Of a DNA stretch of 64,000 bases, positions 4,547 through 58,584 are shown in pieces; the first letter of the stretch is position 1, and every line of letters begins with the position of its first letter. The stretch is from Ranitomeya imitator (taxonomy: Eukaryota). A program made the translations under genes and the position numbers. The notes under the pieces were generated by a model that saw only the letters and a program-made list of their open reading frames with translations, was not told where the DNA came from and searched no databases. The stretch spans positions 10,540,001 through 10,604,000 of the forward strand of contig NC_091291.1 of assembly GCF_032444005.1 (NCBI RefSeq), given 5' to 3'.

Positions 4547-5326
4547 GTAAGTGATCACTATGTAATCCACCGCACCTTCTCATGAAGCCTAAGATTGAAC
4601 GTGCCCGGGACAGAATTTTGTAGCCAAACATGGTATTGAGAGTATCGTATAACTGTCCAATTATAGAAAATGATAAGACAACTGGATCATTTATGCAATG
4701 CTGACATTATAATGGACAGATCATTCTTCTACAAAACCGTAACACTCTCATAGGGGATTTGCTAAGAACTATTGGAGGTCCAACTCTAGATCGAAGGGTC
4801 TGTGGTGGCCACTGATCGAAGCTGAACCAGGACTTGTTCTGATAGCAACAACCTATCCAAGGGTCAAAGTCATCATGGAAAACCAGTTTAGAAACCGGGG
4901 AGAAATCCTCGATATCATAAAAGATTTTCTGGTTGTAAATATCTAAGGGTTTCTCAACTCTTGATTAGTTGATGTCAGCTCACGATCTCTCTGTATTTGG
5001 CTTCCGAAACTTGGGTGACCAACTGGTATTTGCGGGTGAAGGTGCCCTTAGCCATATATATCCGCTATAGGAGAACTTTGGTGCTAAATGTTGGTTATTT
5101 GTTGGATAGGCTTGGTTTTCAAGAGTAGAAGTTGGTTATGTTCCCCAGTGAATAGCAGTTGAGGCATCTAATCTATGACATACATATGCCCTAATAGGAT
5201 CGATGAAATATGGGTTGACTTCACAAGACCCATCCTATGTTTTTAACTCTTCGCCATTACTTATCTCCAGTTTTTACTGCCATTGGCTTAGTTTTGCAAA
5301 CAGTTATTGGTTTATCACTCCCCTAG

Positions 5327-5700
5327 GTATTCGATGCCCAAGAAACAGCATCTACGAGTGCAAACCCCTCTGCTACAACACTTGTGACAATCTCAATGCT
5401 ACATCTTGTAAGAAGTCCTGCACCACTCAGTGTCACTGTATAGAAGGATATGTCTATGATTCTGAAAATTACGACAACTGCGTCCCTATATCCTCCTGTA
5501 AGGTCAACTGTCCACCATACATGACTTTTGTTGAATGCACCAAGACTCCCCAGGAAACCTGCGAAACCCTGGGAATCAAATATCAGGAGGGTGAAAAATG
5601 CATGCCGCGATGTGTATGTATCCCAGACTATGTTCTGTCAAATGAAATCGAACCACGATGTGTGAAGAAGACTAAGTGCCCCCAGATTACTTTCCAATGA
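5327..5700 (+). CDS. TIL-A terminal exon: two tandem TIL domains (10-Cys and 8-Cys); secreted serine-protease-inhibitor-like protein, 149 aa spliced
   Basis: Acceptor CTCCCCTAG|. CPRNSIYECKPLCYNTC..CKKSCTTQCHCIEGYVY..NCVPISSC matches TIL spacing, and a second domain CPPYMTFVEC..RCVKKTKC follows. The three exons total 450 nt, in frame. Confidence 0.92.
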
Positions 5701-17181: not shown

Positions 17182-17370
17182 ATTCCACCATAACCTGCCC
17201 TCCTGACGCTGAAGTATATAACTGTACAGGGTGCTGGTCAGAATGTCCCATTGCAAGAAATATTTGTAGCAGTGAATGCAAGGAAGGATGCACATGTAAA
17301 ATTCTCGGATATTTCCTCCATAATGACAATTGCTTTCCACTTTCTCAGTGCCCGTACCTCCCACTGAAGG
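17182..17370 (+). CDS. TIL-B exon: TIL domain 1 (10 Cys)
   Basis: Acceptor TTTTGTAACCAG|, donor G|GTAAGA, 189 nt. STITCPPDAEVYNCTGCWSECPIARNICSSECKEGCTCKILGYFLHNDNCFPLSQCPYLPLK. Missed by the ORF track because there is no in-frame start. Confidence 0.9.
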
Positions 17371-17689
17371 GTAAGAAATCATGTAATTATATTTGTTTTC
17401 AGAAAAGGGAAGAATGGCAACAGCGGTAAAATATATATTGTATCCGTGTATACTCGTGGTCGAGTGAGCTTCTCAATCTATCTATCACATCACATAGTAT
17501 CGCAAAACCAAACATCGTAGCCTGTATAAAAGTAGAGGCAGGGAATGCAGCAGCCATTTACTGTGTATCTGTATAATGATAGGACATAACAGCTCAAAGC
17601 GCAACACTAGAGAATTTGTGTATGTGTTTTACAACGGTGAGAAAAATTAGCATGGGAAGTGAAGAAAGGAGAATAATTCAGAGATTCAT

Positions 17690-18470: not shown

Positions 18471-18495
18471 AATCCTATTTTCTTTCATTCTTTAG

Positions 18496-18675
18496 ATAAA
18501 ATATGTCCGGGTAACATGGTGTGGAGAAATTGCTCAGTTTGTAAAGATTATTGCCCAGTTCAAGGACAAAGGTGTATAAAGAAGTGCAGGACGGGGTGTG
18601 TTTGTAAGGGCGACTTTTTGCTATATTATGGGAGATGTATCCACAAATCTGCCTGTCCACAGAGATTCGCTTTTG
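18496..18675 (+). CDS. TIL-B exon: TIL domain 2 (10 Cys)
   Basis: Acceptor TTCATTCTTTAG|, donor G|GTAAGA, 180 nt. KICPGNMVWRNCSVCKDYCPVQGQRCIKKCRTGCVCKGDFLLYYGRCIHKSACPQRFAF. Confidence 0.9.
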
Positions 18676-19732
18676 GTAAGAATTATACTGTTTTTCTTTT
18701 TTAACTTTTTTTTTTTCCTTTTCTTGTTATTTTAGTTTTCTTTTTTTCCACCTGTTAACTTGCTAAGTCACGCTAAGTAAAAATTAAAAAAAATTAAAAA
18801 TATTTAAAAAAAACACAAAATTTTTAACTCACTCCCCTTTTGCCCCATAAAAAACAAACAAACAAACAAAAAAAACAAACATATTTGGTATCGATGCATT
18901 CGTAAAAGTCCGATCGATCAAAATATAAAATAAATTAATCCACTCGGTAAGCGGTGTAATGAAAAAAAATCAGAATGCCAGAATTACCGTAATTCTTTCT
19001 TTGTTCACCACAACTTTGCTATAAAATGCAATAACATTGTATCTACCCTGAAATGGTATCGGTAAAAACGTCAACTTAGGGCACGAAAAATAAGCCATCA
19101 CCCTGCCCCAGATCCCAAAAACTGAAATTGGCGACAAAAGAAATTTTTCTTATCTTACACATTCCTTATTTTTGTTTCATCACTTTAGTAAAAAAAAATA
19201 TACATGTGTGTTATCTACGTAATCATACCGACCTGGAGAATCATAATGGCAGGTCAGTTTTATCATATAGTGAATATGGTAAATAAAAAACAATTATGGA
19301 TTTGCAGTTTTTTGTAATTTCGACACACTTGAAATTTTGTTCCCATTCTCCAGTACCGTATATGGTAAAACCATTATGGAAACAGGAATACATCAGGTAG
19401 GACTGCTCTATATGGGTATACCTTGACGTGGAGCAGCTTAGTATACATTTTTTGCAAAAAGCGTATCAACCAAATACCCTGTTTTTTTTAAGATCTTTTT
19501 ACTAGCACTTGCAGATTACTGTGATTTTTTGAAACTGAGAGTTTGTGGTTTTACTATGCTCTTTTGTGTCTTCATGGTAAAACCATTGGTGCCGTTCAAA
19601 AGTCCAACCCATAGCCCTCATATGGCTATATGGCTGTAAAAACTAATAAAGTTATGGCTCTTGGAAGAAGGGGAAGAAAAATTGAAAAATGGCCAAGGCG
19701 TGAAGGGGATAACGTTAATGTCATTATTCTAG

Positions 19733-19911
19733 TTCCCAGCTGTCCCGATGGCCAGAGTTGGCATTACTGTGCTCCGTGCGAATCCTTTTGCTTTCCCGAA
19801 AGTAAATGTGGGAGGGAATGTGTACAAGGCTGCACGTGTGAAGACGAAGATTTGGTATGGTATGATGGAAAATGCATCAAAAGAGAAAAATGTCCTTCAC
19901 TTCCTTCTCAG
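19733..19911 (+). CDS. TIL-B exon: TIL domain 3 (10 Cys)
   Basis: Acceptor CATTATTCTAG|, phase-0 donor CAG|GTAATT. PSCPDGQSWHYCAPCESFCFPESKCGRECVQGCTCEDEDLVWYDGKCIKREKCPSLPSQ. Confidence 0.88.
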
Positions 19912-20431
19912 GTAATTTATTTTGCTTTGTTTTGTAATATTGTCTTGGTGGTTATGGTTGAATGGCACTAAACCAAAGAGAAAAAGCCAATCCAATGATG
20001 GATGATGGATGGATCGATTGGTGGTTGTCTGCCACCAGTAGTTTCCTGTACAGTGACCTCTTCTGTAGTATTGCATGGCGCCAATCGATGAACAGCCATA
20101 TAGCGTGTCCTTAGCCCATCCAATCAGTAGCTAATATGGCCAATCTGGTTTATATAACCTCCTGTAAGATGTCTAGATCCCTAAATAAGGCATAAATACA
20201 GGTGCTGACCAGTGAGGACAACCTGTGTAATATCTAATAATTGATCATTGGCTTCTTTAATAGGATTGTTCCGGAAAGAGAAAAATAGCAACGACACTTT
20301 CTTCCTAAAACAGCAGCTCAGCTCCTTTGAAGTGAATGCCAGAGAAAATCTGTAAATGGGTAACATGCTGTTTTTGGAGGAAAGTCATGTTTTAGTATTC
20401 ATGGACTAAGCCCTTTCAGAAAGAGTATGTT

Positions 20432-25812: not shown

Positions 25813-27016
25813 CAGTACAGAACAAAAGCTTGGACACACCTTCTCATTTAAAGAGTTTTCTGTATTTTCATGACTATGAAAATTGTAAATTCACACTAAA
25901 GTGTGAAACAACTGAAATTATGTCTTATATTCTAGGTTCTTCAAAGTAGCCACCTTTTGCTTTGATGACTGCTTTGCACACTCTTGGCATTCTCTTGATG
26001 AGATTCAAGAGGTAGTCACCGGGAATGGTTTTCACTTCACAGGTGTGCCCTGTCAGGGTTAATAAGTGGGATTTCTTGCGTTATAAATGGGGTTGGGACC
26101 ATCAGTTGTGTTGCGCAGAAGTCTGGTGGATACACAGCTGATAGTCCTACTGAATAGACTGTTAGAATTTGTATCATGGTAAGAATGGTAAGAAAAAAGC
26201 AGCTAAGTAACGAAAAACGAGTGGCCATCATTACTTTAAGAAATGAAGGTCAGTCAGTCCGAAAAATTGGGAAAGCTTTGAAAGTGTCCCCAAGAGCAGT
26301 TGCAAAAACCATCAAGCGCTACAAAGAAACTGGCTCACATGAGGACCGCCCCAGGAAAGGAAGACCAAGAGTCACCTCTGCTTCTGAGGATAAGTTTATC
26401 CGAGTCACCAGCCTCAGAAATCACAGGTTAACAGCAGCTCAGATTAGAGACCAGGTCAATGCCACACAGAGTTCTAGCAGCACACATCTCTACAACAACT
26501 GCTAAGAGGAGACTTTGTGCAGCAGCCTTCATGGTAAAATAGCTGCTAGGAAACCACTGCTAAGGACAGGAAACAAGCAGAAGAGACTTGTTTGGGCTAA
26601 AGAACACAAGGAATGGACATTAGACCAGTGGAAATCTGTGCTTTGGTCTGATGAGTCCAAATTTGAGATCTTTGGTTCCAACCACCGTGTCTTTGTGCGA
26701 CACAGAAAAGGTGACCGGATGGACTCTACATGCCTGGTTCCCGCTGTGAAGCATGGAGGAGGAGGTGTGATGGTGTGGGGGGCTTTGCTGGTGACACTGT
26801 TGGGGATTTATTCAAAATTGAAGGCATACTGAACCAGCATGGCAACCACAGCATCTTGCAGCGGCATGCTATTCCATCCGGTTTGCGTTTAGTTGGACCA
26901 TCATTTATTTTTCAACAGGACAATGACTCCAAACACCTCCAGGCTGTGTAAGGGCTATGTGACCAAGGAGAGTGATGGGGGGCTACGCCAGATGACCTGG
27001 CCTCCACAGTCACCAG
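25813..27016 (+). mobile_element. Tc1 DNA transposon, 3'-truncated, with a frameshifted transposase at about 26176-27010
   Basis: TA|CAGTACAG left end. HTH region KKQLSNEKRVAIITLRNEGQSVRKIG; catalytic motifs VLWSDESKFEIFGS, KHGGGGVMVWG and FQQDNDSKH, spread over three frames. Confidence 0.92.
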
Positions 27017-29319: not shown

Positions 29320-32300
29320 GACAGTAGTGCTGTGCTTGGTGATTACATCACCAGACAGTGGTGCTGTGCTTGGTGGTTACATCACCAGACAGTGGTGCTG
29401 TGCTTGGTGGTAACATCACCAGACAGTGGTGCTGTGCTTGGTGGTAACATCACCAGACAGTGGTGCTATGCTTGGTGATAACATCACCAGAGTGGTGCTG
29501 TGTTTGGTGGTTACATCACCAGATAATGGTGCTGTGCTTGGTAGTTACACCACCAGACAGTGGTGCTGTGCTTGGTGGTTACACCACCAGATAGTGGTGC
29601 TGTGTTTGGTGGTTACATCACCAGATAGTGGTGCTGTGCTTGGTGGTTACACCACCAGACAGTGGTGCTGTGCTTGGCGCTAACATCACCAGACAGTGGT
29701 GCTGTGCTTGGTGGCTACATCACCAGACAGTGGTGCTGTGCTTGGTGGTAACATCACCAGACAGTGGTGCTATGCTTGGTGATAACATCACCAGAGTGGT
29801 GCTGTGTTTGGTGGTTACATCACCAGATAGTGGTGCTGTGCTTGGTGGTTACACCACCAGACAGTGGTGCTGTGCTTGGTGGTTACACCACCAGATAGTG
29901 GTGCTGTGTTTGGTGGTTACATCACCAGATAGTGGTGCTGTGCTTGGTGGTTACACCACCAGACAGTGGTGCTGTGCTTGGCGGTAACATCACCAGACAG
30001 TGGTGCTGTGCTTGGTGGTTACATCACCAGACAGTGGTGCTGTGCTTGGTGGTTACATCACCAGACAGTGTTGCTGTGCTTGGTGATAACATCACCAGAC
30101 AGTGGTGCTGTGCTTGGTGGCTACATCACCAGACAGTGGTGCTCTGCTTGGTGGTAACATCACCAGACAGTGTTGCTGTGCTTGGTGGCTACATCACCAG
30201 ACAGTGGTGCTGTGCTTGGTGGTTACATCACCAGACAGTGGTGCTGTGCTTGGTGGTAACATCACCAGACAGTGGTGCTGTGCTTGGTGGTAACATCACC
30301 AGACAGTGGTGCTATGCTTGGTGATAACATCACCAGAGTGGTGCTGTGTTTGGTGGTTACATCACCAGATAGTGGTGCTGTGCTTGGTGGTTACACCACC
30401 AGACAGTGGTGCTGTGCTTGGTGGTTACACCACCAGATAGTGGTGCTGTGTTTGGTGGTTACATCACCAGATAGTGGTGCTGTGCTTGGTGGTTACACCA
30501 CCAGACAGTGGTGCTGTTCTTGGCGGTAACATCACCAGACAGTGGTGCTGTGCTTGGTGGTTACATCACCAGACAGTGGTGCTGTGCTTGGTGATTACAT
30601 CACCAGACAGTGTTGCTATGCTTGGTGGTAACATCACCAGACAGTGGTGCTGTGCTTGGTGGCTACATCACCAGACAGTGGTGCTGTGCTTGGTGGTAAC
30701 ATCACCAGACAGTGGTGCTATGCTTGGTGATAACATCACCAGAGTGGTGCTGTGTTTGGTGGTTACATCACCAGACAGTGTTGCTGTGCTTGGTGGTAAC
30801 ATCACCAGACAGTGGTGCTGTGCTTGGTGGTTAAACCACCAGACAGTGGTGCTGTGCTTGGTGGTTACACCACCAGATAGTGGTGCTGTGTTTGGTGGTT
30901 ACATCACCAGATAGTGGTGCTGTGCTTGGTGGTTACACCACCAGACAGTGGTGCTGTGCTTGGCGGTAACATCACCAGACAGTGGTGCTGTGCTTGGTGG
31001 TTACATCACCAGACAGTGGTGCTGTGCTTGGTGGTTACATCACCAGACAGTGTTGCTGTGCTTGGTGATAACATCACCAGACAGTGGTGCTGTGCTTGGT
31101 GGCTACATCAACAGTGGTGCTCTGCTTGGTGGTAACATCACCAGACAGTGTTTCTGTGCTTGGTGGCTACATCACCAGACAGTGGTGCTGTGCTTGGTGG
31201 TTACATCACCAGACAGTGGTGCTGTGCTTGGTGGTAACATCACCAGACAGTGGTGCTATGCTTGGTGATAACATCACAAGAGTGGTGCCTGGTTTGGTGG
31301 TTACATCACCAGATAGTGGTGCTGTGCTTGGTGGTTACACCACCAGACAGTGGTGCTGTGCTTGGTGGTTACACCACCAGATAGTGGTGCTGTGTTTGGT
31401 GGTTACATCACCAGATAGTGGTGCTGTGCTTGGTGGTTACACCACCAGACAGTGGTGCTGTGCTTGGCGGTAACATCACCAGACAGTGGTGCTGTGCTTG
31501 GTGGTTACATCACCAGACAGTGGTGCTGTGCTTGGTGATTACATCACCAGACAGTGTTGCTGTGCTTGGTGGTAACATCACCAGACAGTGGTGCTGTGCT
31601 TGGTGGCTACATCACCAGACAGTGGTGCTGTGCTTGGTGGTAACATCACCAGACAGTGGTGCTATGCTTGGTGATAACATCACCAGAGTGGTGCTGTGTT
31701 TGGTGGTTACATCACCAGACAGTGTTGCTGTGCTTGGTGGTAACATCACCAGACAGTGGTGCTGTGCTTGGTGGCTACATCACCAAACAGTGGTGCTGTG
31801 CTTGGTGGTAACATCACCAGACAGTGGTGCTATGCTTGGTGATAACATCACCAGAGTGGTGCTGTGTTTGGTGGTTACATCACCAGATAGTGGTGCTGTG
31901 CTTGGTGGTTAAACCACCAGACAGTGGTGCTGTGCTTGGTGGTTACACCACCAGATAGTGGTGCTGTGTTTGGTGGTTACATCACCAGATAGTGGTGCTG
32001 TGCTTGGTGGTTACACCACCAGACAGTGGTGCTGTGCTTGGCGGTAACATCACCAGACAGTGGTGCTGTGCTTGGTGGTTACATCACCAGACAGTGGTGC
32101 TGTGCTTGGTGGTTACATCACCAGACAGTGTTGCTGTGCTTGGTGATAACATCACCAGACAGTGGTGCTGTGCTTGGTGGCTACATCACCAGACAGTGGT
32201 GCTCTGCTTGGTGGTAACATCACCAGACAGTGTTGCTGTGCTTGGTGGCTACATCACCAGACAGTGGTGCTGTGCTTGGTGGTTACATCACCAGACAGTG

Positions 32301-33700
32301 TTGCTGTGCTTGGTGGCTACATCACCAGACAGTGGTGCTGTGCTTGGTGGTAACATCACCAGACAGTGTTGCTGTGTTTGGTGATAACATCACCAGAGTG
32401 GTGCTGTGCTTGGTGGTTATACCACCAGACAGTGGTGCTGTGCTTGGCGGTAACATCACCAGACAGTGGTGCTGTGCTTGGTGGTTACATCACCAGACAG
32501 TGGTGCTGTGCTTGGTGGCTACATCACCAGACAGTGGTGCTGTGCTTGGTGGTAACACCACCAGACAGTGGTGCTATGCTTGGTGATAACATCACCAGAG
32601 TGGTGCTGTGTTTGGTGGTTATATCACCAGATAGTGGTGCTGTGCTTGGCGGTTACATCACCAGACAGTGGTGCTGTGCTTGTTGGTTACATTACCAAAC
32701 AGTGGTGCTGTGCTTGGTGGTTACACCACCAGACAGTGGTGCTGTGCTTGGCGGTAACATCACCAGACAGTGGTGCTGTGCTTGGCGGTAACATCACCAG
32801 ACAGTGGTGCTATGCTTGGTGATAACATCACCAGAGTGGTGCTGTGTTTGGTGGTTATATCACCAGATAGTGGTGCTGTGCTTGGCGGTTACATCACCAG
32901 ACAGTGGTGCTGTGCTTGTTGGTTACATTACCAAACAGTGGTGCTGTGCTTGGTGGTTACACCACCAGACAGTGGTGCTGTGCTTGGCGGTAACATCACC
33001 AGACAGTGGTGCTGTGCTTGGCGGTAACATCACCAGACAGTGGTGCTGTGCTTGGTGGTTACATCACCAGACAGTGGTGCTGTGCTTGGTGATAACATCA
33101 CCAGAGTGGTGCTGTGTTTGGTGGTTATATCACCAGATAGTGGTGCTGTGCTTGGCGGTTACATCACCAGACAGTGGTGCTGTGCTTGTTGGTTACATTA
33201 CCAAACAGTGGTGCTGTACTTGGTGGTTACACCACCAGACAGTGGTGCTATGCTTGGCGGTAACATCACCAGACAGTGGTGCTGTGCTTGGTGGTGGCAT
33301 CACCTGACAGTGGTGCTGTGCTTGGCAGTAACATCACTAGACAGTGGTGCTGTGCTTGGCGGTAACATCACCAGACAGTGGTGCTGTGCTTGGCAGTAAC
33401 ATCACTAGACAGTGGTGCTGTGCTTGGCGGTAACATCACCAGACAGTGGTGCTGTGCTTGGTGGTTACATCACCAGACAGTGGTGCTGTGCTTGGTGGTT
33501 ACATCACCAGACAGTGTTGCTGTGCTTGGTGGTAACATCACCAGACAGTGGTGCTGTGATTGGTGATTACATCACCAGACAGTGGTGCTGTGCTTGGTGG
33601 TGGCATCACCTGACAGTGCTGTTGAGTTTAGGGGTTCCATCACATGACAGTGGTGATGTACTTATTGGTTCCTTGACAATGGAGCTGAGCTTGGTGGTTG
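29320..33700. repeat. 34-bp minisatellite (about 4.4 kb) with higher-order variant blocks
   Basis: Unit TTACATCACCAGACAGTGGTGCTGTGCTTGGTGG, with recurrent 32-bp variants (ACCAGAGTGG). Confidence 0.95.
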
Positions 33701-34659
33701 CATCAGTTGATGGTGGCGCTGATCTTGAAAAGTTATGCAATTAATTGGTGAAGTATTTTAATTAGTCCGAAAAGTGATGTCTGCTGCCAAAAAACAGTGC
33801 CCAATAACTGCACATATTAAAGGCACACACCCTCTGCAAGTCTGTCAATTGAAGCCACATTCTTACTAGCTAGCTGTCTCAAACCACAAAGGGTTCACAA
33901 TCCAAATTACTTCTCATGATGTTGTCTCATCAAAGCCCATGGCCACCACTTACTGGCTGCATCACCATTCACCTATAATATGTGATGGACCTGGAAATAC
34001 ATTACAGGAGATCAGTATGGATAAGGAGGTGGCCTTCCCAAGATGGTTGTCTCTCGGACAGGTCAACTGTACTCTATATAGTATATATCAGAAAACTTGA
34101 ATTGCTTTTTACAGAAACCTCTGTAGATATCCTCTTCATCTTGATTTCGAGGCAGGGGATTTCTCAGAACTGTCCGCCCTCCAACCTCAGGTTTCATGTT
34201 TTACTTTCATAAAGTCTTCAGCAGAATCTTCAGTTTCTATCACTGAAGACTAAGGTAACGTTCTCTCCTTCTTTGACTTCATTATTTCCATAATTTTTTA
34301 TAAAGGCATCCATATCATTTCTCGTGTACAGACTGAGGAGTTATGATGGTCGGGGTAGACTACAGAGGCCCCAATGGAATAATTAAATTGTGTTCCCTTT
34401 TTTTACAGTTTATACTTTCATCCCTTACAGCAGAGACTGTGACTGTGCACCCCCGACTGATCCTTGATATTAGGGTTGCCAGTAACGAACCGTTCTGACA
34501 GATATAATTGACGACAGATTCTGATATTACATTTTCATTAGTCATAAGGGACTTAATCCCCACAATGATTGGACAAATTCTATAATCTGCCAGGACAGAT
34601 AGACAACCCCATACTTCTCTCCATACGTCCCTACACCCCCAGAGACGATTATATAAACC

Positions 34660-39212: not shown

Positions 39213-42200
39213 TTAACATGGAGTAATAAATAAAATGATTGCCCTGAATAAAGCAAAACCAGAGGCAAAGCCATAAGCAGTGCAAGAGGCTGTACCAGGA
39301 AAGGCACCAGAGGCTGCATCAGTTGCAACATCAGAGGCAGAAGCAGAAAAAGCACCAGAGGCAGCTCCAAAGGCATAACCAGAGGCAGAACCAGAAAAAG
39401 CATCAGAGGCAGCTCCAAAGGCAGAACCAGAAAAAGCACCAGAGGAAGCTCCAGAGGCAGAACCAGAAAAAGCACCAGAGGAAGCTCCAAAGGCAGAACC
39501 AGAGGCAGAACCAGAAAAAGCACCAGAGGAAGCTCCAAAGGCAGAACCAGAAAAAGCACCAGAGGAAGCTCCAAAGGCAGAACCAGAGGCAGAACCAGAA
39601 AAAGCACCAGAGGAAGCTCCAAAGGCAGAACCAGAGGCAGAACCAGAGAAAGCACCAGAGGCAGCTCCAAAGGCAGAACCAGAAAAAGCACCAGAGGCAG
39701 CTCCAAAGCCAGAACCAGAGGCAGAACCAGAAAAAGCACCAGAGGCAGCTCCAAAGGCAGAACCAGAGGCAGAACCAGAAAAAGCATCAGAGGCAGCTCC
39801 AAAGGCAGAACCAGAAAAAGCACCAGAGGAAGCTCCAAAGGCAGAACCAGAAAAAGCACCAGAGGAAGCTCCAAAGGCAGAACCAGAGGCAGAGCCAGAA
39901 AAAGCACCAGAGGAAGCTTCAAAGGCAGAACCAGAAAAAGCACCAGAGGAAGCTCCAAAGGCAGAACCAGAGGCAGAACCAGAAAAAGCACCAGAGGAAG
40001 CTCCAAAGGCAGAACCAGAGGCAGAACCAGAGAAAGCACCAGAGGCAGCTCCAAAGGCAGAACCAGGAAAAACACCAGAGGCAGCTCCAAAGGCAGAACC
40101 AGAGGCAGAACTAGAAAAAGCACCAGAGGCAGCTCCAAAGGCAGAACCAGGAAAAGCACCAGAGGCAGCTCCAAAGGCAGAACCAGAGGCAGAACCAGAA
40201 AAAGCACCAAAGGCAGCTCCAAAGGCAGAACCAGAGGCAGAACCAGGAAAAGCACCAGAGGCAGCTCCAAAGGCAGAACCAGAGCCAGAACCAGAAAAAG
40301 CACCAGAGGCAGCTCCAAAGGCAGAACCAGAAAAAGCACCAGAGGCAGCTCCAAAGGCAGAACCAGAGGCAGAACCAGAAAAAGCACCAGAGGCAGCTCC
40401 AAAGGCAGAACCAGAGGCAGAACCAGGAAAAGCACCAGAGGCAGCTCCAAAGGCAGAACCAGAGGCAGAACCAGAAAAAGCACCAGAGGCAGCTCCAAAG
40501 GCAGAACCAGGAAAAGCACCAGAGGCAGCTCCAAAGGCAGAACCAGGAAAAGCACCAGAGGCAGCTCCAAAGGCAGAACCAGAGGCAGAACCAGAGGCAG
40601 AACCAGGAACAGCACCAGAGGCAGCTCCAAAGGCAGAACCAGAGGCAGAACCAGGAAAAGCACCAGAGGCAGCTCCAAAGGCAGAACCAGAGGCAGAACC
40701 AGAAAAAGCACCAGAGGCAGCTCCAAAGGCAGAACCAGAGGCAGAACCAGAAAAAGCACCAGAGGCAGCTCCAAAGGCAGAACCAGAGGCAGAACCAGAA
40801 AAAGCATCAGAGGCAACTCCAAAGGCAGAACCAGAGGCAGAACCAGAAAAAGCACCAGAGGCAGCTCCAAAGGCAGAACCAGAGGCAGAACCAGAAAAAG
40901 CACCAGAGGAAGCTCCAAAGGCAGAACCAGGAAAAGCACCAGAGGCAGCTCCAAAGGCAGAACCAGAGGCAGAACCAGAAAAAGCACCAGAGGCAGCTCC
41001 AAAGGCAGAACCAGAGGCAGAACCAGGAAAAGCACCAGAGGCAGCTCCAAAGGCAGAACCAGAGCCAGAACCAGAAAAAGCACCAGAGGCAGCTCCAAAG
41101 GCAGAACCAGAAAAAGCACCAGAGGCAGCTCCAAAGGCAGAATCAGAGGCAGAACCAGAAAAAGCACCAGAGGCAGCTCCAAAGGCAGAACCAGAGGCAG
41201 AACCAGGAAAAGCACCAGAGGCAGCTCCAAAGGCAGAACCAGAGGCAGAACCAGAAAAAGCACCAGAGGCAGCTCCAAAGGCAGAACCAGGAAAAGCACC
41301 AGAGGCAGCTCCAAAGGCAGAACCAGGAAAAGCACCAGAGGCAGCTCCAAAGGCAGAACCAGAGGCAGAACCAGAGGCAGAACCAGGAACAGCACCAGAG
41401 GCAGCTCCAAAGGCAGAACCAGAGGCAGAACCAGGAAAAGCACCAGAGGCAGCTCCAAAGGCAGAACCAGAGGCAGAACCAGAAAAAGCACCAGAGGCAG
41501 CTCCAAAGGCAGAACCAGAGGCAGAACCAGAAAAAGCACCAGAGGCAGCTCCAAAGGCAGAACCAGAGGCAGAACCAGAAAAAGCATCAGAGGCAACTCC
41601 AAAGGCAGAACCAGAGGCAGAACCAGAAAAAGCACCAGAGGCAGCTCCAAAGGCAGAACCAGAGGCAGAACCAGAAAAAGCACCAGATTCAGCTCCAAAG
41701 GCAGAACCAGAAAAAGCACCAGAGGAAGCTCCAAAGGCAGAACCAGAGGCAGAACCAGAAAAAGCACCAGAGGAAGCTCCAAAGGCAGAACCAGAGGCAG
41801 AACCAGAGAAAGCACCAGAGGCAGCTCCAAAGGCAGAACCAGAAAAAGCACCAGAGGAAGCTCCAAAGCCAGAACCAGAGGCAGAACCAGAAAAAGCACC
41901 AGAGGCAGCCCCAAAGGCAGAACCAGGAAAAGCACCAAAAGGCAGCTCCAAAGGCAGAACCAGAGGCAGAACCAGAAAAAGCACCAGAGGCAGCTCCAAA
42001 GGCAGAACCAGAGGTAGAACCAGGAAAAGCACCAGAGGCAGCTCCAAAGGCAGAACCAGAGGCAGAACCAGGAAAAGCACCAGAGGCAGCTCCAAAGGCA
42101 GAACCAGAGGCAGAACCAGAAAAAGCACCAGAGGCAGCTCCAAAGGCAGAACCAGAGGTAGAACCAGGAAAAGCAGCAGAGGCAGCTCCAAAGGCAGAAC

Positions 42201-42748
42201 CAGAGGCAGAACCAGGAAAAGCACCAGAGGCAGCTCCAAAGGCAGAACCAGAGGCAGAACCAGAAAAAGCGTCAGAGGCAACTCCAAAGGCAGAACCAGA
42301 GGCAGAACCAGAAAAAGCACCAGAGACAGCTCCAAAGGCAGAACCAGGAAAAGCATCAGAGGAAGCTCCAAAGGCAGAACCAGGGGCAACATCAGAGTTA
42401 GGACCCGTGTAAGTACCAGAAACAACACCAGTTGCAGCTTCAGAGGCAGAACCAAAAACAGCATCAGAGGCAGTACCAGAAGAGCAACAAACAAGGCCCC
42501 AGAGGCAGAAACAGAGGCTCCATCAGAGGCAGCACCAGAAACCACATCATCTGCAGCTCTAAAAGCAGTACCAGCACCAGCACCATAGGCAGTTCCAGAG
42601 ACAGAAGCATCGCCATAGGCAGCACTAGAGGCATCATCAAAAAAAGCACCTGGAAAGCCCCTAATAGCCGCTCCAGAAACAGCAGAGAAAGTACCAGAGG
42701 AAGCATTTGGCAGAATGAGTGATAAAGTGTAAGTATAGCAGTTCCATG
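39213..42748 (-). CDS. Candidate Gly/Ala/Ser/Phe-rich silk-like repeat exon, about 1178 open codons (SGSAFGAASGAF repeats), with two compensating indels; coding status unproven
   Basis: Phase-1 acceptor CATCTTCCCAG|CA at 42748 is in frame with the ORF and there is no stop to 39213. Non-repetitive ends stay G/A/S/Y-rich (SSAAYGDASVSGTAYGAGAGTAF). A 1-nt loss near 42483 and a 1-nt gain near 41939 cancel. No signal exon was found. Confidence 0.4.
39290..42700. repeat. Modular 12-nt repeat array (36/48-nt units) with a 780-bp internal tandem duplication
   Basis: Modules GCAGAACCAGAG, GCAGAACCAGAA, AAAGCACCAGAG and GCAGCTCCAAAG. Diagnostic variants recur 780 nt apart (40141/40921, 40261/41041, 40801/41581). 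Confidence 0.95.
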
Positions 42749-42984
42749 CTGGGAAGATGCCAGATTCTGGCTTTGATCTCTCTACCTTCCTGATCGTATT
42801 TATGAGTAAACAATTAATAAATATTATACAGGATTATCCTATTCCTGACTGCTAAACCCGAATATTGAGGAATGTAAATCTAATATCGGCATCTTCTGTT
42901 TTACAGGTCACTTTCCTTTAAAGGAGAATGAAGTTTTCTCATTTCACTATTCTTTTCCTACTTCAGAAACTTAGTAAGTGCCAA

Positions 42985-43280
42985 TCATGAATTATCTATT
43001 ATCTATCGATCATCTNNNNNNNNNNNNNNNNNNNNNNNNNNNNNNNNNNNNNNNNNNNNNNNNNNNNNNNNNNNNNNNNNNNNNNNNNNNNNNNNNNNNN
43101 NNNNNNNNNNNNNNNNNNNNNNNNNNNNNNNNNNNNNNNNNNNNNNNNNTATTATTTATATATCTATCATATATTTATTATCTATTTATCTATTATCTAT
43201 CTAGTATCTATTATCTATTATCTATCTATTATCTATTAATTTATCTAAAATATTTTTTCTGATTATCTATTTATCTACCC
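42985..43280. repeat. (TATC)n tract with assembly gap 43016-43149
   Basis: ATCT runs flank an N run. Confidence 0.85.
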
Positions 43281-43559
43281 ATTGCACAATACTGAGCTTT
43301 CTTGAAGCTTTGAGCGATTGATGAAGACTCAGTATTATTACAAGTTACATAAACACTGTACACTATGGGTGAATAAAGGAAGGTTTGTATGTACAGAGTA
43401 ACCTTTGTTTTATTTATCTGTATCAATAAATCAGTAGAACGTGCAACAATAAGAAAAAGTGTAGAATATTTTATCAGAGAAATTCACATTTAGTTCCAGA
43501 TGTAAATTCTGCCCCATCGCTATATACTGACTCTACCCCATATTGTGTTCCTTCTTCAG

Positions 43560-43925
43560 GTGTCGTTCAGTCCAACGTCTTATTGTTACAACCTCCGGCC
43601 GTAGCCGCCATGCTCGGTTCCTCTGTTAATTTGAGTTGCCACATGCAGGTAAATGGCGTGAAACTGGTCCGGGTGAATTTATACTGGTTAATTCCATTAC
43701 CCAACAACAACAAATTCAAAGAACGGCTGCATCCGAAAACCAAAAACGAAAGTGACCGGAGCAGAAAATCTCGTCTGATCTATCCGAACTTTACAGAAGA
43801 CCTATCTCTGACCATCGAGGATGTCCAACTGTCCTACACCGACACCTACATATGTGAAACGTCCCTGGTGATAGGAGAGAAGAATAAGCTTGTTACTGGG
43901 AATGGAACATATCTACTGGTTTATG
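43560..43925 (+). CDS. Ig V-set domain exon with germline-joined J-like G strand
   Basis: Acceptor CCTTCTTCAG|, donor G|GTGAGC, 366 nt, phase 1-1. Shows QPP, GSSVNLSC, LYW, LSLTIEDVQLSYTDTYIC and TGNGTYLLV. Confidence 0.92.
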
Positions 43926-44384
43926 GTGAGCAAAATAGCTACTATCTATCTAGAAAAACAAGCAGCACTCCTAGTAATGTGAAAAAGTAAGGGACTTATA
44001 TTAACCCATGCGGAAACATTTCGGTTCGATAATAGAGCTTTTCTCCAGAGAACCGAAACTTTGCCACATGTGCTAATAAACAGCCCTTAACTTTTTAATG
44101 TTTCGGCTCTCCCAGCTGTCAAACTGCGAGTCTTTCCCAAACCATGAACATTCACAGTATATATAGATCAGATGATCACACCTTTAAGTCCCCTGAGGGG
44201 ACTATTAAATCCAGTAAAAAAAAAAGTTTTTAAAAATATGAAAAAATAAAATATAAAAGTTCAAATCATCCCCCCTTGTGTCCCGTTAAAAATAAGGCAA
44301 TTTTAGAAAATTAAAATACACATTTTTGGCATCACTAAAACATAAAAGTCCAATATATCAAAATATGAAGAAAATGAAAACTGT

Positions 44385-45710
44385 ACTAATGTCTGGTGGA
44401 AAAACTAAAACTTCACATCACCCTGAAAACACCATCCCCACCATCAAACATGCTGGGAGCAGCTTCATGCTGTGGGGAGGCTTTTCTTCAGCAGGGGCAG
44501 GGAAGCTGGTCAGAGTTGATGGGAAGAAAGATGGAGCTAAGTACAGGGCAATCCTGGAGGAAACTGTCATGATCCAGGCCAGGTTTTGTTTAGTCTTTTC
44601 CGGTCTAGTCATGTCAGGAGTTATCTTTCACAGCCTCGTTCCTGTGTCCGGTCTGCTATATGTCTGTGCTGCTACCTGTGTTCAGTGCCACCTATATTGT
44701 TTGCCTTCAGCGTGCTAGCTGGCTCTGGTGAGTTCCTGATCTGTCCTGCTGCATTCAGTTAATCTGACCCGTGTTTCTTTATCTATCTACTTGTCTCTGC
44801 TCCTCCTGACTTCCCTGATTGTTTGGATTTCCCAGTACCTAACTTTGGCTTGACTCAGACCTGATTTTGTCTCTCTCTCCTCTGATATTCCTGCTACTGA
44901 CCGGTACTGACCCTTGATCTCCTCTGACTCTGTGCCTCAGTTTTTCCATTTTGCACTGCGTTTTCCTCTGGTATTGACTCGGCTCTCTGACTATTCTGCT
45001 GCCACCTAGTGGTGGCTTCGCTGTACTGCTGTGGGTCTGCTTCTCTGCGGGATATTCAGCTCACTCTCCACTCTGTAGCTATCTAGTGGAGCTTGCGTTA
45101 CTCTGCATTAACCCTCAGTAGTACAGTGTGAAAGAAACATTATAGAGGCTACAAAATACTTGAGAATGGGGCATAAGTTCACCTTCCAGCAGGACAAGGA
45201 CACCAAACATCCTGCCAGAGCTACAATGGAGGGTTTAGATCAGAGCATATTCCAGTGTGTGAACGGCCCAGTCACCGTCCAGACCCAAATCCCAGAGAAT
45301 CTACGACAAGACGCGAAAATGACTGATCACCAACATCTCAATACAATCTCTCTGAGCGAGAGTGAGGGGGCAAAGAAGAAGGGGCAAAATGTCACCTTTA
45401 GGTGTGCAAAGCTGGAGAGACAGATCCCAGAAGACTGCAGAGAAAGCTGGAAGACAGACTCTAAAAGACTGCAGAGAAAGGTGGGAGAGACACACCCCAA
45501 AAGACTGAAGCAGTAATTACAGTGAAAGGTGGTCCTACAAAGTATTGACTCGGGGGGCTGAACACAAATGCTCCTCACAATTTTCAGATTTACAACTTTC
45601 AAATATTTAGAAAACCTTGTACCATTTCCTTTTACGCCTCACATTTAAGTTTTGGGGGTAAAGTGGAAAAAATGTGTAAAAGTTCTCAGAATATGAATAC
45701 TTTTTCAAGT
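44385..45710 (+). mobile_element. Tc1 transposon remnant (catalytic half) interrupted by a solo LTR
   Basis: PTIKHAGSSFMLWGGFSSAGAGKLVRVDGKKDGAKYRAILEE, resuming after the insertion with FTFQQDKDTKH and ending KGGPTKY*. Confidence 0.88.
44565..45133 (+). mobile_element. Solo LTR (569 bp) nested in the Tc1 transposase
   Basis: Starts TGTCATGATCCAG and ends GTGTGAAA (TGACA with one change). 5-bp target-site duplication GAAAC at 44560-44564 and 45134-45138. Confidence 0.8.
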
Positions 45711-45919
45711 ATTTTTTATACCTTGTTTATGCCCTGTGAATGTTCACGGCTTGAAAAAGGTTCACACGGTTTGAAGAACCAAAACATCGCCCACACAGGG
45801 GTGAATGAAGACCACAGGTTTTTTTTCTTACTATGTCATATATGAACTGCAGTCATTTTTTCCATCTATCTATCTCTTATTCTGGCAATTTACTTCTTCC
45901 TACATTTAATAATTTACAG

Positions 45920-46186
45920 ATGACTTGATGACATTTATGAACCAGAGTGACATCGTCTGTAAAGTTGAGGTACAAGCACCGCAGGACGTGGATCTAGTTT
46001 GGGATCTTCAGGGTCAGGAGGACAACGTTTGGTCCAGTGTGATCCCGGCTTCACACAATTCATACTGGATCGTAAGTGTGATGATGAACTGGACTCAACG
46101 GTGCCAAGAGAACAGGACCTTCACCTGTAAGCTCAGGTACAAGGGGCAGAGTCTGGTGGAACACAGTATGGAGGCCCCCTGTGCAG
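45920..46186 (+). CDS. Ig constant-type (C1-like) domain exon
   Basis: Acceptor AATTTACAG|, donor G|GTAAAG, 267 nt, phase 1-1. DIVCKVEV..DLVW..SYWIVSVMMNWTQRCQENRTFTCKLRY. Confidence 0.88.
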
Positions 46187-46931
46187 GTAAAGTATGCCGA
46201 GACAGGAGTTATATTACATTATTCTGTATGCTAGTATATACTGTATATTGTATATACCGTAAGGGATCGTATCTCTGGTGCTTACACAAGGATCCAGTTC
46301 ATAGGTTCAAAACAAGCGTGCCGTTTACTAAATGTCCATAAACCATCCAGCTTACTTCTGGGTACAACAGGCATAACAGAACCAAAGTGGAAAATAAACA
46401 GTCCATGTACAACACGGGTCACCTGGTTGAATGTCTGACCTACACACAGCAGAAACTGAGCCATAGAAGCAAGGTCTTTGCACCTTGCACAAACCACACT
46501 AATGATACAGCCGAATTCCTATATAACTGCCGTACCACAACACCCCTGGGTCAGGATAAGTGAGCAGCCAGTCCCACCCATCTCTTTGACTGCTCGGAAA
46601 CCCATCCCTGGACACATCCTATTAGCGCTCGCAGCCATATAAGGGCTGGAGCCTGCTTTCCGGGCTTATATCACCGAGGCTACCAACCTCGATGATACGT
46701 ATCTCCCCTCGAGAATCTGTCTGGCAGCCACAGAGGAGATATAGGACTGAAAATATTCTTAATCCGCTCATACAATGTGAATAACTGTCCTGATGATATA
46801 TGGTAGCGTAAGGGAAAATATTAAAAAGATGCATGCATGGGTCTTCTTGTGATAGTGTGTCTGCAAAGAGCGGTGTGTCTGGTAATAATACTCAGTTTTG
46901 ATAAGAAGCATCTGGTGTTAAAAGTTGACTG

Positions 46932-47106
46932 ATCATAGAATCAAAGATTGTCAGAGATGGAAAGGACCTCCAGGGTCCTCTTGTCCAACCCCCTGCTTAA
47001 TGCAGGAGTCATTAAACCATCTCAGACAGATGTCTGTCCAGCCTCTGAAGACTTCCATTGAATGAGAACTCACCACCTCTCATGGCCGCCTGTTTCACTC
47101 ATTGAT
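46932..47106 (-). mobile_element. CR1 LINE 3'-end fragment
   Basis: TCATAGAATCA..AGAGATGGAAAGGACCTCCAGGGTC..GTCCAACCCCCTGC matches the reverse complement of the CR1 3' terminus. Confidence 0.7.
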
Positions 47107-47587
47107 CAGGTGACGATTAGAAATGTTTCGGAGAAATAAACGAATATATTCAAATTGATTCATCATCCATTAGGAGTGGGATTGCAAGTCAGCAGATATT
47201 TTGCTGGATTCTTTTGAGGACTGGGAAAGGCTAAAATAGATAAGTGTTAAAACTCATCTATTCACATCATCTCTGATCTCTTCACCGTCACCGCAGATCC
47301 CCGTTCCCCTGCGCTGATGTTCTTTTCTACTATCGCTCCATGCCGATGATGATGTGTGATTGTCCTCATGCAGTCATATGTGGGGGGCAGTTCACATAAT
47401 GACATACATTGCCCCCCCACCTGGCTTGTCCGCACAAAGCTGATCACCACCTCGGATTTTCTTGAACACCAGGATGGAGTAATGGATGAAAAGAAGATGT
47501 CAATGTGTAAAACTCCTCCTGACTGTTACATGATGTCTGGGACGTTCTGGCTGGACCTCTTATAACTGACTGTTTGCATTATTTTAG

Positions 47588-47775
47588 GTGACCTACATTT
47601 CCCTCCACAGCCCACCATGCTCTACATCCTGATTCTGGGAAACTCTTTCCTAATCCTGATCATTATAATTGTTCTTTTATTTTTCTTGGTGAAGAGGAAG
47701 AAGAATAGAAAAGTCCAAGTTGTTGTACCATATGCCAATTTTTCCAATACCTCAAGGAAATATTATAATCATTGA
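47588..47775 (+). CDS. Transmembrane and cytoplasmic terminal exon of the Ig receptor
   Basis: Acceptor ATTATTTTAG|, phase 1. DLHFPPQPTMLYILILGNSFLILIIIVLLFFLVKRKKNRKVQVVVPYANFSNTSRKYYNH*, a hydrophobic helix followed by a basic stop-transfer segment. Confidence 0.88.
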
Positions 47776-48019: not shown

Positions 48020-49950
48020 ACGAACTCTAGACCCCTCTGTCCCCTCCGAAGTCTTCCGCTCTCTGAAAACACCTCTGTCTTCTACAGGCTCCTCTGTCTT
48101 CTCCAGGCTCCTCTGACACCTTTGTCCCTTCCAGGTGCCTCCATCCTCCCCAACTCCTACAGACACCTTTATCCTCCCCTCCTACAGATACCTCTATCCT
48201 CCCCAACTTCTACAGACACCTCTGTCCTCCCCAACTCCTACAGACACCTTCATCCTCCCAACTCCTACAGACACCTCTGTCCTCCCCAACTCCTACAGAC
48301 ACGTCTATCCTCCCCAACTTCTACAGACACCTCTATCCTCTCCAACTCCTATAGACAGCTCTATCCTCCCCAACTTCTACACACGCTTCTGTCCTCCCTA
48401 ACTCCTACAGACACCTCTATCCTCCCCAACTCCTACAGACAACTCTATCCTCCCCAACTCCTACAGACACCTCTATCCTCCCCAACTCCTACAGACACCT
48501 CTGTCCTCTCCAACTCCTACAGATACCTCTATACTCCCCAACTCCTACAGACACCTCTATCCTCCTCAACTTCTACAGACACCTCTATCCTCCCCAACTC
48601 CTACAGACACCTATATCCTCCCCAACTCCTACAGACACCTCTATCCTCCCCAACTCCTACAGACACCTCTTTCCATCTCAACTCCTACAGACACCTCTAT
48701 CCTTTCCAACTCCTACAGACACCTCTATCCTCCCCAACTTTGACAGACCCCTCAATCCTCCCCAACTCCTACAGACACCTATATCCTCTCCAACTCCTAC
48801 AGATACCTCTATCCTCTCCAACTCCTACAGATACCTCTATGCTCCCAAACTTCTACAGACACCTCTATCCTCCCCAACTCCCACAGACACCTATCCTCCC
48901 CAACTTTGACAGACCACTATATCCTCCCCAACTCCTACAGACACCTCTATCCTCCCCAACTCCTACAGACACCTCTGTCCTCTCCAACTCATACAGACAC
49001 CTCTGTCTTCTCCAACTCCTACAGATACCTCTATACTTCCCAACTCCTACAGACGCCTCTATCCTCCTCAACTTCTACAGACACCTCTATCCTCCCCAAC
49101 TTCTACAGACACCTCTGTCCTCCCCAACTCCTACAGACACCTTCATCCTCCCAACTCCTACAGACACCTCTGTCCTCCCCAACTCCTACAGACACGTCTA
49201 TCCACGCCAACTTCTACAGACACCTCTATCCTTTCCAACTCCTATAGACACCTCTATCCTCCCCAACTCCTACAGACACCTCTTTCCTCCCCAACTCCTA
49301 CAGACATCTCTATCCTCTCCAACTCCTACAGACATCTCTATCCTTTCCAACTCCTACAGACACCTTTATCCTCCCCTCCTACAGACACCTCTATCCTCCA
49401 CAACTTCTACAGACACCTCTGTCCTCCCCAACTCCTACAGACACCTTCATCCTCCCAATTCCTACAGACACCTCTGTCCTCTCCAACTCCTACAGACACG
49501 TCTATCCACCCCAACTTCTATCCACCTCTATCCTCTCCAACTCCTACAGACACCTCCGTCCTCCCCAACTTCTACAGACACCTCTATCCTGCCCAACTTC
49601 TACAGACACCTCTATCGTCCCCAACTCCTACAGATACTTCTATCCTCCCCAACTTCTACAGACACCTCTGTCCTCCCCAACTCCTACAGACACTTCTATC
49701 CTCCCCAACTCCTACAGACACCTCTATCCTCCCCAACTCCTACAGACACTTCTATCCTCCCCAACTCATAGACACCTATATCCTTCTCAACTTCTACAGA
49801 CACCTCTCTCCTCCGCAACTCCTACAGACACCTCTATCCTCCCCAACTTCTACAGACACCTCTGTCCTCCCCAACTCCTACAGACATCTCTATCCTCCCC
49901 AACTCATAGACACCTTTATCCTCCCCAACTTCTACATTCACCTCTATCCT
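48020..49950. repeat. 28-bp minisatellite, C-rich on the + strand
   Basis: Unit CCTCCCCAACTCCTACAGACACCTCTAT. Confidence 0.93.
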
Positions 49951-50899
49951 CCCCATCCACTATGATGTAATATCTGGACACTGTGATTTTGACGCTACAT
50001 AAATATCAAGTGTCAAAACTGCACCAATTCCTGATCATTGGCACGTATACTAAGAGGTATAAGGAGGAGGCAAAATCCTAATGTTCCAGTGATTGCTACA
50101 ATGCATCAGTCTGAATTACAGACTGTTCAGCTAAAAAAGTATTGACTAGAATTTATTCAATTGTATCGCTTCTTAGCTGAGAAAGTTGTATCATCAGCCT
50201 GCTATATTCCAATATAACCTAGAATTGTTTTCATTCATCTGTAGCAAACTGAGAACTTGTGAAAGATGGAGAATTGAAACATAAAATATATTGAAAAGTC
50301 TGTATAATGCTGTGTGCGCAGTACTATGATAATAAAAATGCCTGTTGAGAACTTTTTCGTATGTGTCATGTTTGCGGTCTCAGTTCCGGGGGTTTGAAGT
50401 CTATTCTGCTAATGCTGCATAGGTGTTAATAAATGGTAAAAACAGGATGTAAATACAAATTTATATGCGTGATAGTATTACCTGTGGTCTTATTTTCACA
50501 GAAGAAACATTAGATTCACGTTATCTAGGTCAGATTTCTTTCCAGTTCATAAGAAATTAAAAATAAATATATTTTTAAATATTCAATATTATAATAGATT
50601 TTAACTAAGACGTTACATATATTTGGTAAACGCTCCATAAACATAACTGGATACTATATATCAAATATGTAAGACCACAGAAAACTGATATTATTAAAAA
50701 GGTGGAAGTGTTAAGAAACCGCAGCAACTCAGGTATGAAGTGGAGAGGAGACCCCATAACATTACAGAGCGGGGGGCCAAGTGCTGAGGAGCAGAGGGCA
50801 GAAAAGTCACAACCGCTCTGCTGACCCCATAACTCCATAATAAATAAAGTGCTAGTGCAGTAGAACACCAGTAGATGTCACCATAAATCCGTGGGAAGG

Positions 50900-57803: not shown

Positions 57804-58144
57804 TTAGGGAATGGGACAATCTTCTATCTTCACACACTTAAAATTGGAAAATATATAGCCGTCATCACAGACACATGAAGGAACGTTGCTGCAGGTGTCA
57901 GGGTTATGTCCTTCTTCACAGTTTGGTTGGCAGGTGGATGCGTAGGGCTCATAGTGCATGTTAGCTGGACATTTTCCTTCGCAATCTTCGGGCTTGACGC
58001 AGCCTGCATTGGATGGGATAAGGCCATCATCACATCTACAGCCATAATATTGATGGTAGGTACAGAGTTTCCCCGGGTAGTTAGGGCTGTTACAGGTTGT
58101 ATCACATCCAGTAATGAGTCCATAATGTGTGTTTAGAGGACAAA
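57804..58144 (-). CDS. TIL-C terminal exon: two 8-Cys TIL domains; 140-aa secreted protein when spliced
   Basis: Acceptor TTCGGTTCTAG|, phase 1. CPLNTHYGLITGCDTTC..CTYHQYYGCRCDDG..CVKPEDC and CPANMHYEPYASTCQPNC..CSNVPSCVCDDGYIF..CVKIEDC. The three exons total 423 nt, in frame. Confidence 0.9.
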
Positions 58145-58584
58145 CTAGAACCGAAGAAGATAAAAATCTCACGTTAAGGAATTGTTACCGACCACAAAGT
58201 CCACTTTAGTCAATTACAATTTTTGTCTGACATTTTTGGCCCGAACACTACAGGGTGAATATTGGGATCTTCCCAAGTTCCAACAAATAACTACAGCTTG
58301 TTGGGTCTCCCATGTGATTAGAGTTCATCTCACATGATCAGTAAATTTACGGAATGTGTCAATCAAGCTGTCAATCAAGCTGTCAATCAAGCTTTACAAT
58401 TATTATTATCCGCAGCAAATCGTCGTGTGTAAACTACAGAGGAGCTGCCGAGAACAATGACAGTTCCTGTGCATGGAAGGATCTTATTAATGATCATTCT
58501 GTGCACAAAGAATTCTGGTCTGTCTGTGTAAACAGGTGTCAATCAGCAGTCGTTCAACAGCCAACAATTGTAAGTTCTGCTCAC

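Follow-up and report, generated by a model that had tools for sequence, protein, structure and literature searches.

A transcribed, non-rearranging V(J)-C1 membrane protein gene of antigen-receptor-like build in Ranitomeya imitator and its orthologues across frogs

Non-rearranging V(J)-C1 genes are the main living clues to the target that the RAG transposon met about 500 million years ago, and to our knowledge only a few of them have been described, namely NKp30, PRARP and UrIg. A stretch of 64,000 nucleotides from the frog Ranitomeya imitator (RefSeq assembly GCF_032444005.1, contig NC_091291.1, positions 10,540,001 to 10,604,000 of the forward strand), which is called the window here and whose first letter is position 1, raises the question of whether a gene of this kind lies within it and how its product might work. 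An original prediction, made from the letters alone, had placed such a gene at 43560-47775 and described it as a possibly uncharacterised receptor with costimulatory-type signalling.

The reading that we favour, with a probability of about 0.6, is that the locus holds a selectively maintained and expressed gene for a type I membrane glycoprotein that works as a non-rearranging antigen-receptor-like chain. It builds on observations of the gene model, its splicing, its domain types, its orthology across frogs and the purifying selection acting on it, from which we infer the steps of a mechanism. The protein consists of a signal peptide, a VJ-type V domain, a C1 domain, a short stalk bearing a cysteine, a transmembrane (TM) helix and a tail of 26 residues. 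What is gained is a clean, transcript-supported model of one non-rearranging V(J)-C1 gene, together with one-to-one orthologues in other frogs.

The locus contains one gene on the + strand with four coding exons (leader, V, C1-like, and TM plus tail), each of them in phase 1. Its parts, and the repeat at its 3' end, are as follows.

42928-42973, + strand: coding portion of the leader exon, MKFSHFTILFLLQKL followed by base 1 of a Ser codon, located by tblastn with dendrobatid proteins
42974-43559, + strand: intron 1, including a masked run at 43016-43149 and a (TATC)n-type microsatellite
43560-43925, + strand: V exon, encoding a V-set domain whose germline G strand is J-like (TGNGTYLLV, 43895-43921)
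43926-45919, + strand: intron 2, with repeat-derived stretches at about 44070-44690 and 45150-45610
45920-46186, + strand: C1-type constant-like exon of 88 codons, with a membrane-proximal Cys codon at 46180-46182
46187-47587, + strand: intron 3, with a highly repeated element at about 46960-47110
47588-47775, + strand: last coding exon, with a short stalk, the TM helix, a basic stop-transfer sequence, VPYANF, YYNH and the stop codon at 47773-47775
47614-47691, + strand: TM helix, with an Asn codon at 47641-47643
47725-47742 and 47761-47772, + strand: tail motifs VPYANF and YYNH, respectively, in the last coding exon
48138-49955: minisatellite of about 65 copies of a 28-bp unit, inside or directly after the 3' untranslated region (UTR)

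The 5' UTR has its upstream limit at about 42884-42891, and the leader exon ends at a GTAAGT donor at 42974. The V exon comprises 121 full codons, the last residues being TGNGTYLLVY. Introns split the codons for S, D and G, and the splice borders are GTAAGT/AG, GTGAGC/AG and GTAAAG/AG. A database protein of R. imitator, P0057 ("unnamed protein product", 288 residues, annotated gene span 4885 bases), is identical to the leader translation over residues 1-15, and the exon-wise translations as a whole equal it save for two residues (M/L at 33 and Q/H at 234). P0057 was used as the full-length stand-in for work at the protein level, and the exons were searched individually. The gene product is already present in the predicted protein set of R. 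imitator and so is known to databases. In its outline the original prediction was accurate: the V exon, the C1-like exon, the uncharged TM helix with its Asn and the tail with VPYANF and YYNH all lie where it had placed them, and its mature size of about 270 residues agrees with a precursor of 288. Another candidate leader, at 43389 (MYRVTFVLFICI...), was rejected, as 43300-43453 has no contig depth and the upstream letters of the contigs come from elsewhere.

Splicing is documented at both downstream junctions. Spliced contigs from the runs of three studies skip 43926-45919 and join V to C (43925>45920, GT..AG), and contigs that skip 46187-47587 and join C to TM (again GT..AG) come from runs of two of those studies. 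In none of the four runs is unique, non-repeat intron sequence covered at all, so the runs represent RNA and the exon-joined form does not come from genomic DNA. Two contigs start matching at 43560 after 67 and 90 upstream letters that are absent from 43300-43559, which is what splicing from an upstream leader exon would give. At the other end, transcript contigs run about 280 bases beyond 47900 and stop at the start of the 28-bp minisatellite; the 3' UTR extends to at least about 48180, and the earliest AATAAA past the stop codon is at 50331. Letters 43819 and 43822 are variant in two runs, so that Asp-Glu replaces Glu-Asp around strand E of the V domain. R. variabilis also has Asp-Glu, and the variants reflect a shared polymorphism, or else the runs derive from a sister taxon.

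Very many contigs, at 90-95% likeness and with high summed depth, match the intron stretches 44070-44690, 45150-45610 and 46960-47110. These are transcribed genome repeats and lie outside the mRNA of the gene. The open reading frames of intron 2 had no Pfam match, for which reason their reading as Tc1 transposase was dropped and they are treated as repeat-derived only.

The first domain is a V domain joined in the germline. Its exon matches Pfam V-set with an E-value (E) of 9.8e-9 (35.8 bits, cut-off 26), with cysteines at exon residues 26 and 98. In and beside the exon there is no exact recombination-signal heptamer and no heptamer-nonamer pair with at least 6/7 and 6/9 matches; weak pairs occur only in intron 2, on the opposite strand. 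The transcripts are colinear with the germline, and the V and J-like segments share one exon, without the separate, signal-flanked V and J segments that mark rearranging immunoglobulin (Ig) and T-cell receptor (TCR) genes. Both the signal search and the colinear transcripts thus bear out the proposal of a germline-joined VJ-C1-TM gene that lacks recombination signals.

The GNGT type of G strand is in common with the non-rearranging VJ domain of NKp30 (NCR3) and of Xenopus XMIV, and so the gene could belong to this group of VJ receptors linked to the major histocompatibility complex (MHC). NCR3-labelled proteins of frogs and salamanders do match the V domain (P0010, E 4e-13; P0024, E 1.5e-5), but they consist of tandem V domains with no C1 domain and have another TM segment and tail. 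Solved NKp30 structures match the V exon only at E 0.085-0.16. NKp30 is without a C1 domain, carries a TM Arg for pairing with CD3-zeta or FcR-gamma and is MHC-linked, and none of these traits was seen in the frog gene, whose TM helix has no charge; we consider membership of this group highly improbable.

The class of the second domain was also at issue, and the original preference for C1 over C2 or I-set is upheld. Its exon scores 20.2 bits against Pfam C1-set (cut-off 21) and 16.6 bits against C2-set_2, and among 17 family members C1-set matches seven and C2-set_2 one. The two cysteines stand 56 residues apart, a Trp follows 14 residues after the first of them, and the F strand reads FTCxLxY. 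When a C-domain profile was compared with the PDB, the best 60 matches listed were Ig heavy-chain constant domains without exception (E 1e-15 to 7e-11), with IgG CH3 at E 1e-15. The C-domain model has a mean predicted local distance difference test score (pLDDT) of 93, and its nearest Foldseek neighbours are MHC class II beta-2 domains and the membrane-proximal domain of CD80. By its sequence rather than by its fold, the second domain is classed as C1-type.

Taken at full length, the family resembles receptor chains. A whole-family profile aligns with the Ig lambda light chain over both its V and its C domain, as far as the final Cys, and the full-length model (pLDDT 87) has Ig light chains and TCR chains as its closest structures; a language-model protein atlas returned generic V-C clusters of the immunoglobulin superfamily only. 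V domain, J-like G strand, C1 domain and final Cys of Ig lambda and TCR chains can all be aligned to the frog family. In contrast to those chains, the frog gene has V and J in a single exon without signals, possesses its own TM segment and tail, carries Thr rather than Phe or Trp before G-x-G and has a short C domain (88 residues).

How widely the gene is kept was approached by an exhaustive protein search with the V exon, which returned 40 proteins at E up to 0.001. The best matches are V-C-TM proteins of 259-309 residues. Among frogs they come from Hyla, Eleutherodactylus, Dendropsophus, Pseudophryne, Rana, Aquarana, Discoglossus, Ascaphus, Spea and Xenopus, and outside frogs from the salamander Pleurodeles, the lungfish Protopterus and the teleost Denticeps. 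Database labels read "uncharacterized protein" or similar throughout, in agreement with the suggestion that the receptor might be uncharacterised. The gene tree follows the frog species phylogeny, and its only duplications are internal to the genera Dendropsophus and Hyperolius; the Dendropsophus pair is in tandem, on the same strand and 14.7 kb apart. Judged from these sequences, the orthologues are one-to-one across frogs, and the salamander, lungfish and teleost relatives are more distant. Against Dendropsophus, the ratio of nonsynonymous to synonymous substitution rates (dN/dS) is 0.19 for V, 0.24 for C and 0.46 for TM plus tail, at a dS of about 1.2 that is near saturation; between the two Dendropsophus copies the values are 0.73 and 0.54. 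The gene is under purifying selection. Two profile searches returned only frogs, Denticeps and weak matches to flatfish proteins labelled "cd7 antigen-like", and no relative from birds, reptiles or mammals appeared in the V-domain search at E up to 0.001 or in these profile searches, which were limited by a word index so that the blank carries little weight.

Several relatives depart from the common layout. P0019 (Xenopus laevis LOC121395660) and P0020 (Pelobates fuscus) have two consecutive C1-like domains, each ending in P-C, so the C exon was duplicated in the Xenopus and Pelobates lineages. In the stingray Hemitrygon akajei, P0008 has three tandem VJ domains (GNGTVLLV) with no C domain, and its TM segment, which contains a Lys, starts with P-L-P-L-Y-I-L-L-G and resembles the motif of the frog family described below. 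In the sturgeon Acipenser ruthenus, P0071 has two VJ domains and no C domain. The module of VJ plus TM may have existed before C1 was joined to it.

The Denticeps gene, which is likely orthologous to the frog gene, offers a view of the genomic setting. Its neighbours are a kinase gene and a ZP-domain gene in one direction and two Ets genes in the opposite one; the kinase matches DYRK1A best and is assigned to it (E 2e-22; DYRK1B, 6e-8), and the first Ets gene is of ERG/FLI1 type. In human, DYRK1A, ERG and ETS2 lie together on 21q22, which is not a classical MHC paralogue.

This setting bears on whether the gene could be the amphibian counterpart of CD7, with the C1 domain in place of the proline-rich stalk of the mammalian protein. 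The closest PDB match of the V exon as a single query is indeed CD7 (E 3.7e-4), followed by antibody and TCR V domains, and CD7 shares the J-like G strand; the weak flatfish matches point the same way. Human CD7 also resembles the frog gene in having four exons and a tyrosine in a short tail, and is encoded at 17q25. The link to CD7 is nevertheless weak, because a family V profile built from 19 members ranks antibody light-chain V domains, JAML and pIgR above it. Furthermore, CD7 has a proline-rich stalk, no C1 domain and an unrelated TM segment, and the neighbourhood in Denticeps, the one compact genome examined, is of the human 21q22 type (DYRK1A, ERG/FLI-type, Ets) and not of the 17q25 type. 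An amphibian CD7 is accordingly a very unlikely identity for the gene.

Which part of the protein does the family keep most faithfully? Between major groups, identity is 0.38 for TM, 0.31 for V and 0.26 for C, as compared with 0.13, 0.06 and 0.06 expected from composition only. The TM helix consists of 26 hydrophobic residues including one Asn, without charged residues, and is followed by KRKKNRK. Its family motif is P-x-x-L-Y-x-L-x-L-[GA]-[NS]-[ST]-x-L-I-L, in which each of P235, L238, Y239, I249 and L250 is retained by 23-25 of the 26 species, each of G/A244, N/S245 and S/T246 by 21-24, and the Asn itself by 17. The TM motif is the best-conserved part at long range, which suggests assembly through the membrane. 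The stalk Cys225 is found in all frogs of the family.

A mechanism for the antigen-receptor-like chain that we favour can be sketched from these features. The V domain would bind a ligand. Through the C1 domain and the membrane-proximal Cys225 the protein would form a disulfide-linked dimer, as light chains and TCR chains do. The conserved polar side of the TM helix, made up of Tyr, Gly/Ala, Asn/Ser and Ser/Thr, would pack onto another helix, that of a second copy of the protein or that of a partner chain. Since the membrane helix is better kept than the tail motif, the question moves from the SH2 partner of the tail to the partner of the helix. Helix pairing is approachable in Xenopus, which has the orthologue LOC121395660.

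The tail is the least conserved region of the protein. Only hyloid and ranoid frogs (Neobatrachia) retain the tyrosine of VPYANF, and because it is missing in basal frogs and in non-frogs, tail signalling is not a core function of the family. Asn at +2 of this first tyrosine occurs in dendrobatids and ranoids, with Lys, Pro or Met elsewhere; several other hyloids read YAK, YPK or YAP. In the ranoids Rana and Aquarana the site is a canonical immunoreceptor tyrosine-based inhibitory motif (ITIM), S-L-Y-T-N-I and I-V-Y-T-N-I, and VPYANF of Ranitomeya has Phe at +3 and so is not a canonical ITIM. The C-terminal YYN is found only in the two Ranitomeya species, Dendrobates having R-Y-N-D and other hyloids K-Y-N-G, neither of which is YxN. 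The neobatrachian tail would have gained its one tyrosine later, as an ITIM-like context and a YxN site at once, and once phosphorylated this tyrosine could recruit an SH2 protein, which would more probably be inhibitory (SHP-type) than costimulatory.

The original prediction had instead taken the protein for a costimulatory-type receptor, in which two phosphorylated YxN sites bind Grb2-family SH2 domains and the TM Asn drives dimerisation. Both YxN motifs are indeed present in R. imitator, and in R. variabilis as well, the first one recurs in other dendrobatids and in ranoids, and the TM Asn is kept in 17 of 26 species. That the motifs exist was correct; as a twin they do not extend beyond Ranitomeya, to which the second is confined, and the first is not conserved across the family, most hyloids having Lys, Pro or Met at +2 and the tyrosine being absent outside Neobatrachia. 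Nor does signalling that is costimulatory rather than of ITIM type follow, as ranoid frogs have a textbook ITIM at the same site. The plan of CD28, CTLA-4 and ICOS (a single V domain, a dimer through a stalk Cys, and YxN or YxxM in the tail) differs from that of the frog gene, which has an extra C1 domain and a YxN that is not conserved. We regard the costimulatory reading as unlikely.

Several points weigh against the reading of the gene as a dimeric antigen-receptor-like chain. Dimerisation, the TM partner and phosphorylation are all read from sequence. Cys225 is absent in Pleurodeles, Protopterus and Denticeps, and most frogs have an extra Cys199, which could pair with Cys225 within the chain. 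Archaeobatrachian frogs and Xenopus lack the tail tyrosine, and so do the three relatives outside frogs (salamander, lungfish and teleost). Finally, the second exon falls 0.8 bits below the Pfam C1-set cut-off, and in a VIA-align comparison of the C-domain model, C1, C2 and I-type neighbours are tied at Z 9-10, so the fold alone is not decisive; the UrIg2 structure 9dmx is among these tied matches (Z 9.7).

A rival that concerns identity and novelty, not mechanism, is that the family is the PRARP family and hence already described. PRARP1 and PRARP2 of chicken have in common with the frog gene a germline VJ, a V-C1 form outside birds, a TM anchor, a short tail whose tyrosine is ITIM-like and a Cys suited to dimers. 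These non-rearranging VJ genes (Fu et al. 2019, J Immunol 202:1992) reportedly have a potential ITIM, form disulfide-linked homo- or heterodimers, are expressed in B and T cells, and are said to have V-C1 orthologues in bony fish, amphibians and reptiles. The VJ plus C1 domains, the conserved stalk Cys, the ranoid ITIM, the tandem pair in Dendropsophus and the bony fish and amphibian members of our family would all fit, and neither family has a mammalian member that was found. On the other hand, the searches described above, exhaustive for the V domain and two with profiles, yielded no relative from reptiles or birds; the window has one such gene and not a pair, and its motif has Phe at +3. 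PRARP has been cited as a VJ gene bearing on the origin of antigen receptors and placed "in the MHC" (PMC10751288), whereas in Denticeps the gene sits with DYRK1A to one side and an ERG/FLI-type gene to the other. We judge the chances that the family is PRARP to be about even.

The converse identity is that of a separate, undescribed VJ-C1 lineage, which would predate tetrapods and would have been lost or have diverged past recognition in amniotes. In the compact teleost genome its place would be a block of the human 21q22 type and not an MHC paralogue, and its most conserved part, the polar TM face, would imply an obligate partner chain. We think this possible but rather doubtful. If true, it would mean that a non-rearranging chain has survived that is assembled like a B- or T-cell receptor.

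Two further systems invite comparison with the antigen-receptor-like chain proposed here. Elasmobranch UrIg and UrIg2 are nonrearranging V-C1-C2-C3 genes that are discussed as relics of the antigen-receptor precursor (PMC12227049). They have a nonrearranging V plus C1 in common with the frog gene, but UrIg has at least three constant domains and is heavy-chain-like, whereas the frog gene combines a single C domain with a TM anchor, a form in which the family is not seen in cartilaginous fish. SIRP proteins likewise have a V domain followed by C1-type domains, the profile match to SIRP-alpha reaches E 1.7e-18, and the Xenopus and Pelobates members with their two C domains are similar in this respect; SIRP proteins, however, have long tails with multiple ITIMs or a TM Lys that pairs with DAP12, and the frog gene has neither.

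In frogs, the 10-kb flanks of the gene contained no other called gene. Within the window the receptor gene has on both sides exons encoding the trypsin-inhibitor-like cysteine-rich domain (TIL), as follows.

5203-5700, + strand: TIL-domain exon
17190-17378, + strand: TIL-domain exon
18477-18680, + strand: TIL-domain exon
19630-19971, + strand: TIL-domain exon
57804-58172, - strand: TIL-domain exon

A TIL-domain gene also lies upstream of the orthologue in Spea bombifrons, and since this frog too has the upstream TIL set, the linkage is old within frogs.

The remainder of the window is marked by repeats. A long tandem repeat at 29426-33744 contains many overlapping open frames (MVLCLVVTSPDSGAVLGG...) and no signs of a gene. 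A 3.2-kb tandem array at 39285-42539, with periods of 36, 48, 84 and 132, stops some 390 bases short of the leader exon and has long open frames on both strands by repetition alone. At 26176-26951 there is a remnant of a Tc1/Sleeping Beauty-type transposase, with HTH_32, HTH_SB and HTH_Tnp_Tc3_2 matches split over several frames.

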